A stretch of DNA of 64,000 nucleotides from Oopsacas minuta (lineage: Eukaryota > Animalia > Porifera). Positions within the stretch are counted from its first letter, which is position 1. Each line of letters begins with the position of its first letter. Under the pieces are notes generated by a model that was given only the letters and a program-made list of their open reading frames with translations, was not told the origin of the DNA and searched no databases. Position numbers and translations under genes: made by a program. The stretch spans positions 62,001 to 126,000 of the forward strand of contig JAKMXF010000006.1 in assembly GCA_024704765.1 (NCBI GenBank), read 5' to 3'. Positions 7,820 to 14,164 of this stretch are shown one piece after another.

Positions 7820-8398
7820 CAGTTCAGTAATGAAGCAATCTACAAATAATGTGAGAATATCTTTCGCTATCAAAATTATTCTCATTGTTGGCTGAAATGA
7901 AGACGATCTGGTCAAATGAAACCTCTTTACATCACCATGATTCCTGGATTTTGCTGCAATACACAGGAGCAAACTTTAGGCTTTTTTCATTTTATGAATT
8001 AACTCTGCGAATATCAGTAATAGGTAAGCGATTCAGGATTACTGAAATTCGTTTGCTACCAAGTACCAACTGTAAACTATCTCCCAAATCCAGTGGCGAG
8101 GCTAGGACCACACGAAGTTGCCGTAATGCCGCATCTGTAATATATTTTTATGTAAATTTTGGTGGGCACAATAAAATTTGTTAGGGAATGTGCCGCATGT
8201 GCCGTATCTACCATTCATTCAGATTCCACCATAATTTCCTTTTCCTTTAGATTCCACTAGTTTCTACCATTCAGTCAACTTCCTATATATTTCCTTAATA
8301 TATGGGCTGTGTTCTGCAATCTTGGTCTAGTATGTTCGTAGTCTTAAAGTTTGTACAGGTCATTTGAGGCAAATATTGAAATGGTACAATGTTCCAAT

Positions 8399-8563
8399 CA
8401 GTGTTTCCCCCAAAGCGCGTTAAGCGGGTCAATTAACGCGCTTAGAGTATCTAGCAGCGTTAAAATAAAGACTCCATGCATTGGGCTTAGTATGCGTATA
8501 TGTGACAGAGGCCCCACATAATGATATCATTAGCGCTTTCCCAATCTTCAGTGGGAAACACTG
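8399..8563. mobile_element. hAT-type MITE (165 bp)
   Basis: TIR CAGTGTTTCCC / GGGAAACACTG; TSD GTTCCAAT / GTTCCAAC. Confidence 0.8.
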
Positions 8564-8863
8564 GTTCCAACACACCCCATGTCATCCCTATGCCTTACAT
8601 AGTCATAACGAAACAGAAATATATACTGATTAAACAGTCAAACTCAACATTGTACCCCTATTTAGATATCAGTATAATCAATAACATCGCTACAAAGTGA
8701 ATATTCTACAAATTCAATAGCATATTTAGACTTCAGAGTAATGTCTTGCTTATTGAGCTATATATTTGAGCCTAAATTGGTTTGAGCTCATAAACTTATC
8801 TAGTGCTTGAGAAATACAAATTCAGCGGTGAATAATAAATCCATCTGTTTAAATTCACAGTAA

Positions 8864-9940
8864 TTACTGGCAATTCCAGTTTCCAATTCCGTATAAAGCG
8901 TTTACCAGCGTTCCCATCATAACAGTATCGGATGGTGCTTGGAAGTCAAACACCATCAAACCCTCATAGCCATTATCTTTTATCCATTGGACATCTTTCT
9001 CTGGGTTGGGAGAAATTTGCCCAAACCAAAACCCAAGTGACAACCTGTCTTTACCCATACCCTTATCAACATATTGAGGAAGTCTGAATATAGGATTTCC
9101 ACCGTAAGTCATTTCCCAACCATAATCTAACGTATCAGAAAGTTTTTTTCCTTTATAAATGGTGTCAAAATTATGTATATCATTAAACAGAGCTTTTGAG
9201 ATAATTTTATCTGGCATTAACTGCTGCATTATTGACGTTACCATAACAAGAGATGTCTGGTTTGGAATTCCAATGCTATATTCATCATCAATATCGATAC
9301 CATCCAATCCATATTTATCTACTATGTCTGTCTTTAAATAGTTAACAAAAGCCGTCGCTACAATTTCTGATGTAAATTGAGACCAACCTACTGCTGAATG
9401 ACCATTCAGAATAGTCAGCAATACTGTAATGCCCTTATCCTGTAGAGCCTTAACAACCCCGCTATCAAGAACTTCCTGAATATTTGGATTAAACTGATTT
9501 AACGTGGGTGGATTGTTATTGTTTGCCCTTAGAGAAGGCAGTTCATTTGTACAATAATTACCTCCAAAGATACAAACCACATCAACAGCCGGGCTTCCAT
9601 CGGCAAGAGTATAAGAAGCAATATTTAGAAATTGTTGAGAATCATCTGGAGTAGTATACGCGACTGTCATATGATTCTTATTGTAGGCATCACATTGAGG
9701 TGCGACACCATACCAAGGTATTCCACTGAAAAACACGGCATCACCTGGGTTAAACATCCTCAGTTGTCCTTGGTTGTTAATTACTATATATTGACGACAG
9801 AGAAAAAAGAAAGTGATGTTAGGGTTCTTGATGGCAATTCGTTTTGCTTTCACTGGTGTACAATTCCGAACTGTCTTGATGAGATTATCCCAATTAGCTC
9901 CTCCGTACATTGCAACATTAGTTGATTTTATCCAACCCAT
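8864..9940 (-). CDS. GH18 endo-beta-N-acetylglucosaminidase (Endo H-like) with an extra ~88-aa N-terminal module; intronless
   Basis: 358-aa open frame. VKALQDKGITVLLTILNGH and KYGLDGIDIDDEY match the Endo H pattern (VRPLQQQGIKVLLSVLGNH ... KYGLDGVDFDDEY), with the DxDxE catalytic motif intact. No signal peptide. Confidence 0.9.
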   Translation of the reverse strand: MGWIKSTNVAMYGGANWDNLIKTVRNCTPVKAKRIAIKNPNITFFFLCRQYIVINNQGQLRMFNPGDAVFFSGIPWYGVAPQCDAYNKNHMTVAYTTPDDSQQFLNIASYTLADGSPAVDVVCIFGGNYCTNELPSLRANNNNPPTLNQFNPNIQEVLDSGVVKALQDKGITVLLTILNGHSAVGWSQFTSEIVATAFVNYLKTDIVDKYGLDGIDIDDEYSIGIPNQTSLVMVTSIMQQLMPDKIISKALFNDIHNFDTIYKGKKLSDTLDYGWEMTYGGNPIFRLPQYVDKGMGKDRLSLGFWFGQISPNPEKDVQWIKDNGYEGLMVFDFQAPSDTVMMGTLVNALYGIGNWNCQ

Positions 9941-9950
9941 AGTATACCCA

Positions 9951-9957
9951 CTCCTTT
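9951..9957 (-). promoter_or_regulatory. Shine-Dalgarno-like motif upstream of the GH18 ATG
   Basis: Minus strand reads TAAAGGAGTGGGTATACT-ATG; AAAGGAG ends 10 nt before the start codon. Confidence 0.55.
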
Positions 9958-11218
9958 AATTATGTGTTGTTACCACCTGAGTTACCTAACCATATGTAAA
10001 AGGAAAAAATAATATTGCATTGAATACAGTGCATTAATTTACAACCGTCTCTTCAACATAATGTTATTATCACATATTGCACTTCTTACCAATACCTAGC
10101 AGTTATTTGCTGTATAAGGCTGTTTGTTTATACGTATGTTTTTTTTCTTAGAATAAACTCCTGGTGTAACAAACCTGGTGTCGTTATAGTGGTGAATGTT
10201 ATATTCAGAGAGTATATGCCTCTCTGGAGCTCTGTCAAGGACCAGACCAGTATTGGGAACGATTGCGAGTGTATGTATTAAATATGTAAGGTTTGCCGCA
10301 ACTATAGTTTTTTAATGAAGGAATCACTTTAATAACTCAATAGAGAGTTATTCTACATTGATTTTATTTTTATAGCATATTAGAGATAACTTGTGATACA
10401 TTAGCATCAATCAACCGTTTTTGTGGGAAACCTCCAATTATGTATTTTATTACATTTACAGAGACTATTAGACTATGTAAATGATGTTAAAAATGTGGAG
10501 TTGTATCTAAAATACTTTATGAAATTGTGACAGATCATGAAATCTAATTGAAACCCCGTGTTATAAGGGGACAGTCAACGAAAGAATGCTTGTTTTATTG
10601 ATCACGTTATTCATTATATCATGATTTATCGTCAGTTAATCTTAGTACTCTGGCTCTATATTGCATAATTTCTGGCCCCATTTACATCAAAGGGGAATTT
10701 CTCCTATTTATGTCAGACTTTGTCATCTTATATACTTGCAAGTTGCAATTATCTTTATTTTTTGTATTTGCTATACCAATTGCATTATTAACAGATATAC
10801 AGCTTCTAGATTACGTATTCAATATATTCACTTAAGTAAGTCGGTGATGAAAGATGCGAATGTGGTGATGAAACGTTCATTCTCCTGGACAACTCGCCAT
10901 ATCTCCAAATCATGACAACTAATCTAGAATTCAAAGAGACAATAAGTCACCAAACCATGAGGTCACCATACCGTATGATATTAAGTTTTTAACAATGAAA
11001 TGTTTGTGTTAAGTTATCTTGATGCATTCATGTATTTAATGTCTCAGGAGAGAAGTGACGTTCCTTAACTTTCCATACGAGCATTGTTCTTCTGTTTGGA
11101 TGCACACAATAACTTTATCATTTGAACCAAATGTCGAACAAAATCGAAGTATTTTCTCTAGAAGGATCCTCCTATATAATAAGATAAGAGTAAACGTGAA
11201 ACTGGAATCAGTTACAAA

Positions 11219-11901
11219 TAGGGGTTACAATCCCGGGATTTCTGGATTGAAATTTACCTAATCCCGGGATTTTTCGGGATTGTATCTTACGTACCAAATT
11301 TTGTGAATGTCAATTTGGGAAGTTTAGAGAAGAAAAATATGTCTGATGGCTCGACTTGAGATGAACATGTAATCCTTTGGTTGGCCCACCATCACATCAC
11401 ACTTTAATACTTTTTACATAATTTGCATTGCGCAAATTTGCCACATAAAGATCAAAGAAAATGTTTCAAGATTTCAGCACCAACAAAATCTTGAAAAATA
11501 GGTGATGTAGTTTCTGCCATAATAATTTAAGAGAGAATGCGAGTATCTAACATTTGATTATTGGAGAAAACCTATTTATAGATTAATGACACTAGTACTT
11601 GTAATCATCGTATTTTCTTGTTGTTATTTAGGACTGAATATTGGAATACATACAATTCGTGTCATGATTATTGATTTAAATAAGACTATGTATTTGTAAG
11701 TTACCATCGTAAATAGAATATTGATTCCAGGTAGTGTTATTATACAATAGATAAATTATTAGGAAATTGCTATTGTTAAACATAGAGTAAGATAGAGATA
11801 ACACAAAAATTTCGGTATCCCGGGATTGCAAGACTGGATTCGGGATTTGAGAAACAATCCCGGAATGAACACACATCGGGATCCCGGGATTGTAACCCCT
11901 A
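11219..11901. mobile_element. hAT-type MITE (683 bp)
   Basis: 21-bp perfect TIR TAGGGGTTACAATCCCGGGAT; subterminal CCCGGGAT repeats; degenerate flanking duplication (TTACAAA). Confidence 0.75.
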
Positions 11902-11914
11902 GACTTACAAACCT

Positions 11915-12153
11915 CAAGCAGTGCTTTATATTCATAAAAACGATAAATTTACATATGATTAATCCAAAAGTGTGAAAATCGGATTCAGCATGTTCGATAT
12001 ATTTAGTAAAGTTTATTGAATTCTTTACTTCCTTGATAAACACGATAAATACATAGTTATCAACATTTTCATAATTGCATACCGTAGATCCTTTCCTTGA
12101 CAACGGACAAACAAACAAACAAACAAACAGACAACAATTGAGATTTAAGCATA
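11915..12153 (-). mobile_element. Helitron-like family A, partial 5' half
   Basis: Reverse-complement match to 6530-6760, including the (TGTT)n tract. Confidence 0.6.
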
Positions 12154-12448
12154 AGCTATTTGTAAGCCGTATTATGGGCATTCAGATAATCAAATTAGTC
12201 TACATTTGTGTATGGCAAGCAAATTAACCAAATCTTAAAATATAGGTACAGCCTTGCTCTAAACGGCTACCCAGTGGTAAGTAAGTACGCTGAATCCGAA
12301 TTTCGCATTTTAAGTTTCTCATCTGTAAATCTATTGTTGTTTTTATGAATATAAAGTAAACAAATTTCAAAATTGTTATAGAATCATACTTTCAATGACT
12401 GTACTGGTATACTCGAGTATGCTGAGTCTGAATATTGTAAACAACATT

Positions 12449-12551
12449 AATATTATTAAATCTCAGTTGTTGTTTGTCTGTTTATTTGTCCGTTGATTAC
12501 CTTGAGGCGCAATGCGCCGAGTTCATCGCGAAGCAACGAGCCAAAGGCTCG
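12449..12551 (+). mobile_element. Helitron-like family A, internally deleted mini-copy
   Basis: 5' motif TTAAATCTCAGTTGTTG joined directly to the 3' motif GAGGCGCAATGCGCCGAG...GGCTCG|T. Confidence 0.6.
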
Positions 12552-13021
12552 TTACCATTAAAATTGATAATTGTAAAATCATTTCACAAATTCTGATAAA
12601 CATGGACTCACATCCCCAATGACCACCCTTGCTCTTTAGGCATTAGGCTACTGAATCTAGTTAATATACCGTATACATATAGCCTGGAAAGTGTAAAAGT
12701 GTGTCAATATATATATTTAAGATAAATATACAATTGAATCTACAAAATTTTGTTGAGAATAATTGGGTAATTGTTTTGCATTCATTTTCAGTTATTAATC
12801 TTTATATGGATGCCGGTTATATGAACACCTGATATAACAATAAGCCGGATATGAGCAGCATCTTATCGAAAACAGTTATCATATAATCTTGTATATTTTA
12901 TGCTGGTTATAAGCCTATGTAAAGCTACCGCCAGGTTTATATTTAACCTGTAGTGCACAATGTTATGCTGTTTCTACAGTTAGAATCTTATGCAATCTAC
13001 GTAGAAAAATTTGATAAGTTA

Positions 13022-14164
13022 ATGGCTACTAACACTATCGATTGTCATCACAAAGTGGTGATTGACAATGGTTCTGAAAGGATGAAGGTAGGCTTCCATG
13101 GGGCAGATACACCCTCTTACATATTCCCGACTCTTCTTGGCCGAATCCGATATTTATTTCTTCTTCAAATGAATTATAAGGAAACTTATGTTGGAACAGA
13201 AGCACAAGCAAAACGTGGTATCCTTGCTCTACAGTATCCGGTAGAATATGGTATAATCACAAACTGGGATGCTATGGAGAAAATATGGCATCACACATTC
13301 ACTAATGAATTACGTGTAGCATCAGAGGAATGCACAGTTCTATTGACAGAACCACCTCTTAACCTTGGAGCTAACAGAGAGAAAACTATTCAGATAATGT
13401 TTGAAACATTCGGTATCAATTCTCTCTATTTGTGCAACAGTTCTATACTATCTCTGTATGCTTCTAGTCGTACTACTGGAATTGTGATAGAATCAGGAGC
13501 AGGGGTGTCACACATTGTACCTATCTTCAAGCAACGTACACTTACTAACGGTATACCACGTCAAGATGGTGTTGCTGGCAAAGATCTGACTGAAATCTTG
13601 ATGAAAATGATGTGTGAACGTGGCTACTCATTCACCACAACAGCCGAAAGAATGATTGTTAACGAAATGAAGGAACAGTTATGTTATGTAGCTTTAGACT
13701 ATAAGCAAGAGATGATAAGATCACAATCAGATTCCAGTCTGGAGAAGAATTATGAATTACCAGATGGTGGCATGTTGAATGTTGGTAGTGAGAGATTTCG
13801 TTGTCCGGAAGCTCTTTTCGATCCTTCTCTGATAGGAGTGAGTACACACCGTTTGCAAGATCTAGTGTATAACTCCATTATGAAGTGTGACAATGAGATA
13901 CATAAGTATCTCGCTAGCAATATTGTATTATCTGGAGGTAACACAATGTTTCCTGGTTTCTCAGAGCGTATTGAGAAGGAAGTAATCAAGCTACTTAGTC
14001 CGGATATGAGAGTTAAAGTTATTTCTCCTTCAAATAGAGAGTACAGTGCATGGATAGGAGGATCTGTTCTAGCTTCTATGAATGATTTCAATAACGTTTG
14101 CTTATCTAAAGCTGAGTATGATGAATATGGACCTTGTATTGCGTATAGAAAATATGTACATTGA
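13022..14164 (+). CDS. Divergent actin / actin-related protein, intronless, 380 aa
   Basis: Colinear with actin (DNGS, YPVEYGIITNWDAMEKIWHHTF, ELPDG, ERFRCPEALF, NIVLSGGNTMFPG, WIGGSVLAS). Likely start is the ATG at 13022, not the GTG at 12953. Confidence 0.9.
   Translation: MATNTIDCHHKVVIDNGSERMKVGFHGADTPSYIFPTLLGRIRYLFLLQMNYKETYVGTEAQAKRGILALQYPVEYGIITNWDAMEKIWHHTFTNELRVASEECTVLLTEPPLNLGANREKTIQIMFETFGINSLYLCNSSILSLYASSRTTGIVIESGAGVSHIVPIFKQRTLTNGIPRQDGVAGKDLTEILMKMMCERGYSFTTTAERMIVNEMKEQLCYVALDYKQEMIRSQSDSSLEKNYELPDGGMLNVGSERFRCPEALFDPSLIGVSTHRLQDLVYNSIMKCDNEIHKYLASNIVLSGGNTMFPGFSERIEKEVIKLLSPDMRVKVISPSNREYSAWIGGSVLASMNDFNNVCLSKAEYDEYGPCIAYRKYVH

Follow-up and report, generated by a model that had tools for sequence, protein, structure and literature searches.

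A probable relic of a bacterial ribosome-binding site in the leader of a GH18 gene of the glass sponge Oopsacas minuta

Genes of bacterial descent that settle in an animal genome must be started by the machinery of the new host, and the GH18 gene of Oopsacas minuta raises the question of whether any of the donor's own start signals came with it. The window analysed here is a 64,000-nt stretch of assembly GCA_024704765.1 (contig JAKMXF010000006.1, positions 62,001 to 126,000). A preliminary description had read the 71 bases upstream of the start codon as the relic of a Shine-Dalgarno (SD) site preceded by eukaryotic splice acceptors, and had taken the locus for a snapshot of domestication, in which co-transferred bacterial leader DNA is connected to a host promoter by a 5'-UTR intron. 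The pyrimidine tract, TAG, CAG, AAAGGAG and ATG were all found on the minus strand where that description had placed them (Table 1). When an animal genome is said to contain bacterial genes, the claim is often disputed as contamination, and the origin of the gene is dealt with before its leader. On balance, an ancestor of several glass sponges is likely to have acquired a bacterial Endo H-like GH18 gene horizontally, the 71 bases representing its 5' leader.

Table 1. Features in and around the GH18 leader. Positions are those of the window; negative numbers count from the start codon.
Feature	Position	Strand	Basis or remark
Intronless Endo H-like GH18 endo-beta-N-acetylglucosaminidase gene, bacterial origin	8864..9940	-	ORF, homology, tree
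Spacer, 10 nt, relic to ATG	9941..9950	-	6 nt in bacterial relatives and L003
AAAGGAG, very probable relic of donor SD	9951..9957	-	sequence and bacterial leader comparison
Leader segment aligning to bacterial L090 leader (62% protein identity)	9950..9974 (-34 to -10)	-	local alignment
CAG, candidate 3' splice site	9977..9979 (-37)	-	36-nt leader without upstream ATGs if used
TAG, candidate 3' splice site	9986..9988 (-46)	-	45-nt leader if used
Pyrimidine-rich tract before TAG	9996..10011	-	75% pyrimidine
Actin paralogue, intronless	12953-14164	+	Pfam Actin E 2e-115; start probably 13023

A GH18 gene of bacterial ancestry in sponge DNA

The GH18 ORF is uninterrupted (358 codons, 358 aa; ATG at 9940-9938). 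Its product matches the Endo H structures 6ve1 and 1edt (E 4e-28, residues 87-282) and retains an intact catalytic DGIDIDDE motif (D-x-x-D-x-D-x-E), which is invariant across the homologue alignment. The score obtained with Pfam PF23916 (EndoS TIM-barrel) was 27.8 bits, above the cut-off of 27. The NCBIfam Endoglyc_H score, 123.9 bits, falls below the equivalog cut-off of 300, and the product is therefore a relative of Endo H rather than an equivalog. Like Endo H of Streptomyces plicatus, it is a TIM-barrel GH18 protein with the same catalytic motif; unlike Endo H, it carries a conserved N-terminal extension of 90 residues, which is also present in its bacterial relatives. The N-terminus does not appear hydrophobic by eye, and there is no obvious signal peptide. 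Since the first residues, M-x-W-x-K, are common to the sponge product and the full-length homologues, the ancestral start codon is the one at 9940. A database protein, P0001 (348 aa), begins at Met11 (9910); as bacterial homology extends from Met1, this gene call is 10 residues short. An intron-split, eukaryote-type GH85 endo-beta-N-acetylglucosaminidase gene is kept in O. minuta (contig 144, 311727-312878), and its persistence led us to reject the idea that the acquired GH18 gene replaced a lost cytosolic GH85 enzyme.

A maximum-likelihood tree was built from 86 rows, corresponding to six full-length sponge copies and 80 bacterial rows. The sponge copies form one clade (SH-aLRT 99) within a broad bacterial radiation, in which no sister group is singled out. 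By protein identity, the nearest homologues are found in metagenomic bacteria (65-67%), on contigs featuring a dense bacterial gene order, and in Pyrinomonadaceae/Blastocatellia MAGs (62-63%). The gene is thus nested in the diversity of its donors, is integrated in host DNA and is present in related hosts. This pattern points to a single transfer from a bacterium to a sponge, after which the gene was duplicated and relocated.

The bacterial ancestry of the protein is the one observation that would speak for contamination or a chimeric assembly, in which case the ribosome-binding site would be a live bacterial one. This explanation has next to no probability, as the gene is embedded in sponge DNA. 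Its GC3 (0.32) is similar to that of adjacent host ORFs, whereas GC3 ranges from 0.54 to 0.74 in the bacterial relatives. Read-derived unitigs span both ends of the coding sequence into the flanks (X1, 9869-11577, with 0 differences; X4, 8300-8981), and an actin ORF lies 3 kb away. Five more sponge copies (65-69% protein identity) come from other assemblies, where their contigs are low in GC, reach 1.19 Mb and also carry transposase, NHL, RRM and Tim44 genes nearby. The products of two genes beside L003, one of these copies, share 84% and 91% identity with O. minuta proteins, which identifies those contigs as DNA of related glass sponges. A seventh copy (L007, 1-1162), found in a separate public run, is the nearest to the gene in the window, with 81% nucleotide identity to its coding sequence, and is frameshifted near codon 268.

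Copy number varies among the sponges. At least four or five GH18 copies are present in a related sponge assembly, including L002 and L005 on one 1.19-Mb contig and L004; some of them have opposite orientation, lie a few kb apart and adjoin Tc3-type transposase ORFs. Copy L003 extends beyond the usual stop, to 389 aa. In O. minuta, four sequencing runs cover the intergenic DNA at the locus evenly and therefore behave as DNA. Between positions 8952 and 9987, the summed unitig depth in these runs is 2-40 times that of the flanks over the coding sequence, and in run X4 it reaches 530-1010 over 9185-9875, vs about 25 in the flanks. Unitig ends fall at 9941 and 9987, and differences cluster, together with a 1-nt deletion, at 9140-9184. 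The excess depth hints at extra copies or divergent alleles that are absent from the assembly, where the gene is single-copy. A very high-copy repeat with many loose ends was noticed at 11846-12633, where summed contig depth ranges from 10,000 to 270,000, vs about 50-200 elsewhere.

Divergence between sponge copies is considerable. Values of dS range from 0.5 to 0.8, and dN/dS values of 0.2-0.4 mark the coding region as being under purifying selection. Together, these figures suggest that the gene is old, functional and fairly fast-evolving rather than a recent arrival; the same dN/dS values and the intact ORF lend indirect support to its expression in the host. The notion of a snapshot of domestication is consequently not supported: the transfer is old, base composition is ameliorated, and the copies are shared among sponges, duplicated and selected. 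In several respects the gene resembles glycoside hydrolases and other genes acquired horizontally by bdelloid rotifers, nematodes and insects, as it is intronless, bacterial in type and nested among bacterial sequences, and shares with them a host-like composition, flanking host genes and duplication within the host lineage. It differs from those cases in that the host is a glass sponge, and in that the untranslated leader of the donor can still be recognised over a few dozen bases. In the full text of the O. minuta genome preprint, horizontal transfer and trans-splicing both go unmentioned.

Homology of the proximal leader to bacterial leaders

We compared the 80 nt located 5' of the start codon in about 50 bacterial homologues. 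All eight of the closest bacterial leaders compared feature AGGAG about 6 nt before the orthologous M-x-W-x-K start, the commonest forms in the bacterial relatives nearest the sponge clade being AAAGGAGTTTCCT, GAAGGAGTTTCTT and AAAGGAGTGCGCT. The sponge AAAGGAG contains the same anti-SD-complementary purine core (AGGAG/GGAGG) at a position homologous to the SD sites of the bacterial orthologues. Flavobacterial relatives have no SD, and the argument for a relic therefore depends on which bacteria were the donors. An additional frameshifted homologue (65% identity) was noticed on a low-GC (36%) bacterial contig (L097, 1501-2594); TAGGAGG precedes its start codon at a distance of 7 nt.

The spacing had been described as that of an SD site. 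It does lie within the usual range (about 5-10 nt), at its long end, since the sponge spacer exceeds the 6 nt of the bacterial relatives; the difference looks like a 4-nt insertion relative to the bacterial and L003 spacers. We then asked how often such a motif occurs before other start codons, using 264 kb of O. minuta DNA as the background sample and counting AGGAG ending 4-12 nt before an ATG. AGGAG at this spacing is found at 0.67% of 9,788 ATGs, and AAGGAG at 0.16%. Among 42 ORFs of at least 150 aa, the GH18 gene alone has AGGAG at SD spacing.

The resemblance is not confined to the motif. In an anchored, ungapped test, the last 13 nt before the ATG were matched to the best of the eight bacterial leaders, and all 9,799 ATGs in the same 264 kb served as background. 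Four of the six other sponge copies have 10-11 matches: L003 (GAGGAGTTTACT) matches at 11/13 positions (background P 0.0001), and L001 (AAAGGATTTTACC) and L002 and L005 (both AAAGAAGTTTGCC) match at 10/13 (P 0.0014). The values are lower for L007 (TTATTAGTTTATT; 9/13, P 0.007), for the window (AAAGGAGTGGGTATACT; 8/13, P 0.04) and for L004 (6/13, P 0.34). A 4-nt shift lifts the match of the window to the bacterial 13-mers from 8/13 to 10/13. Moreover, the 9-mer AAAGGAGTG of the window is identical in 9/9 positions to a 9-mer in the leader of the bacterial homologue L009 (P 0.0005, shifts of 0-6 nt being allowed).

Farther upstream, the window aligns locally to the leader of another bacterial homologue, L090, with a score of 33 that was reached by 3 of 20,000 shuffles; when the SD is left out, P is 0.046. 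A nhmmer profile of the eight bacterial leaders, which is diffuse, found no significant match in 319 kb of sponge DNA and missed the sponge leaders, and homology upstream of the SD thus rests on the single pairwise match to L090. No similarity to bacterial flanks was detected beyond -47 or 3' of the stop codon. Taken together, the L090 alignment, the L009 9-mer and the 13-nt matches of the sponge copies bear out the proposal that bacterial leader DNA was co-transferred. The SD and spacer of the donor appear to have come with the gene, as did, probably, some 35-47 nt of leader. Counts of sigma-70 promoters and terminators around the GH18 gene equal the shuffle expectation, and such signals were rejected. 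A sigma-70-like TTGACA-16-TATACT (11/12) occurs at 10211-10238 on the minus strand, about 270 nt 5' of the GH18 start, where there is no bacterial homology.

AAAGGAG could instead have no tie to the donor and be a run of purines that arose by chance, the 5' leader being rich in A. The motif is short, the ungapped match of the window has a P of only 0.04 and requires a 4-nt indel to reach 10/13, and the profile search was not significant. These points are outweighed by the low background rate (0.16-0.67%), by the retention of the SD and a bacterial spacer in independent sponge lineages, each with a P of 0.0001-0.0014, and by the rank of the L090 alignment among shuffles. Already disfavoured, a chance origin is improbable, and AAAGGAG is very probably the relic of the ribosome-binding site of the donor. 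Pairing of an SD with 16S rRNA is not expected to play a part where 80S ribosomes translate a nuclear gene; given the nuclear location of the gene, AAAGGAG can only be the relic of such a site. It resembles a bacterial SD in having an AGGAG core upstream of the orthologous start codon, and differs from a working one in belonging to a eukaryotic nuclear gene and in having a spacer that has grown to 10 nt.

Decay of the motif among sponge copies

The seven sponge copies differ in the state of the motif, which is intact in two (the window and one other), one substitution away in four and lost in one. The loss occurred in L007, where the SD is gone and TTATTAG ends 6 nt short of the start codon. 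Sponge lineages are identical at 0.44-0.63 of upstream positions and at 0.6-0.7 of four-fold sites. According to our own arithmetic, the neutral identity expected at a dS of about 0.65 is approximately 0.56. These values fit a relic that decays at a roughly neutral rate, selection being unneeded to account for what remains.

Alternatively, the purine-rich leader may have been kept by selection, for instance as a splicing enhancer downstream of an acceptor that is weak, or as an element acting in translation. In line with this, a purine-rich run (AAAGGAG, GAAGAGGAG or AAAGAAG) occupies the homologous place in every copy except L007. However, identity upstream of the gene is no higher than at four-fold sites, and the loss or truncation of the run in L007 and L004 fits neutral decay. 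We regard selection on the leader as very improbable, and keep to neutral decay of a donor relic. A purine gained at the Kozak -3 position in sponge copies carries no meaning, as 21 of 43 native long ORFs have a purine there.

Candidate acceptors and the capping of a foreign transcript

The two AGs upstream of the relic differ in quality. The 20 nt before the TAG are 75% pyrimidine, which corresponds to the 99th percentile of 15,153 YAGs in the 264 kb sample, and the 20 nt before the CAG are 50% pyrimidine, which is average. The last upstream ATG is at -53; both AGs lie just downstream of it, and no other ATG occurs before the start. Six of the seven sponge copies (the window, L001, L002, L004, L005 and L007) have a YAG between -34 and -40. 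The individual triplets change, as L007 has TAA in place of the TAG of the window and L003 has AAG in place of its CAG. Additional YAGs are nearer the ATG in L007 (-7), in L002 and L005 (-14, CAG) and in L004 (-9, CAG), those of L007 and L004 being located at the former SD place. Alignments of the upstream region of the window with those of the other sponge copies were not significant. We rejected conservation of the AGs as a sign of constraint, because upstream identity does not rise above that of four-fold sites and neutral ancestry suffices. The end of an X4 unitig at 9987 is ambiguous. A search for sequencing runs containing the locus yielded the four DNA-like runs and none of RNA, and a contig search found no transcript contig encoding exactly the GH18 product. 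Use of either AG as an acceptor is possible, and we lean slightly against it; both are listed as candidates.

Two kinds of acceptor can be envisaged. In the preliminary description, a cis-spliced 5'-UTR intron ending at 9986 or 9977 connected the bacterial leader with an exon close to a host promoter. The canonical and unusually strong pyrimidine tract of the TAG agrees with such an intron, as does the location of both AGs downstream of the last upstream ATG. Against it, no donor exon was identified upstream, the four DNA-like runs yielded neither spliced reads nor spliced contigs, and start codons in O. minuta are typically served by acceptors of the leader type. Moreover, about 60% of O. minuta transcripts (9,872/16,340) are single-exon (PMC10282587). 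A cis intron has accordingly little probability.

Spliced-leader trans-splicing has been reported for glass sponges (PMC10282587, PMC7986045). In the sequence at hand, 5 of 28 ORFs of at least 200 aa have a YAG directly adjoining the ATG, vs 3.1% of all ATGs (binomial P about 0.0015, own arithmetic), and a YAG is found within 10 nt of the ATG in 57% of these 28 ORFs, vs 29% of all ATGs. This enrichment fits trans-splicing and makes a leader acceptor likelier than a 5'-UTR intron. The nearest YAG of the GH18 gene is 36 nt away; in 24 of the 28 long ORFs the distance is 36 nt or less, with a median of 9.5 nt. As with the spliced-leader acceptors of glass sponges, no further ATG separates the upstream YAG of the GH18 gene from its start codon, and the genome is one in which such acceptors are enriched at start codons. 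Unlike typical ones, which lie at a median of about 10 nt, the GH18 YAGs are 36-45 nt off and are candidate acceptors. That the candidate AG serves as a spliced-leader acceptor is a tentative proposal, still rather unlikely in itself but given about three times the probability of a cis 5'-UTR intron.

Upstream of the actin ATG at 13023, CAG, TAG and TAG occur at 47, 43 and 18 nt. The similarity of a TCTACAG..TTAG sequence before this gene prompted the idea that the block TAG-G-T-G/A-A-G/C-TCA is the relic of a spliced leader from a retroposed trans-spliced mRNA. Genome counts led to its rejection, as the actin motif is found three times in the genome, vs once for a reversed control, and the GH18 leader motif is found once.

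The history that we propose starts with an ancestor of several glass sponges, which would have acquired a bacterial Endo H-like GH18 gene horizontally. The 5' end of the insert would have been no less than about 13 nt, and probably 35-47 nt, away from the start codon, and the ribosome-binding site and spacer of the donor would have been included. In the sponge cytoplasm AAAGGAG would have had no SD function, and the relic would have decayed neutrally. No bacterial counterpart is detectable for the T-rich tract that carries the TAG and CAG at 37-46 nt upstream. If used, this tract would most likely receive the sponge spliced leader, an upstream cis exon being less likely. The spliced leader would provide the mRNA with a cap and with a leader of 36 or 45 nt free of upstream ATGs.

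More doubtful is the full sequence of events, in which a host 3' splice site beside the insertion let a spliced leader cap a transcript still bearing the ribosome-binding site of the donor, and sister copies then evolved nearer acceptors, some of which overwrote the SD. To see progressive remodelling of the leader in the near-ATG YAGs of L007, L002, L005 and L004 is speculation. An easing of the expression of transferred genes by trans-splicing has been discussed for Paulinella and rotifers (PMC6053224), and the present locus offers a concrete test case for spliced-leader trans-splicing as an aid to foreign-gene expression.

The reading of AAAGGAG as a relic is supported, and the GH18 relic adds a well-documented example to a phenomenon already known; a shallow literature search brought up no earlier case of an SD preserved in front of an animal gene that came from bacteria. 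A donor leader that remains recognisable, and that decays about neutrally while the coding sequence is selected, constitutes evidence for transfer at the DNA level that is independent of the protein tree, and its homology to bacterial leaders shows how far upstream the insert must at least have reached. If the fuller sequence of events is true, the GH18 copies of glass sponges would hold a stepwise record of how the 5' end of a promoter-less bacterial gene was domesticated by trans-splicing in an early-branching animal.
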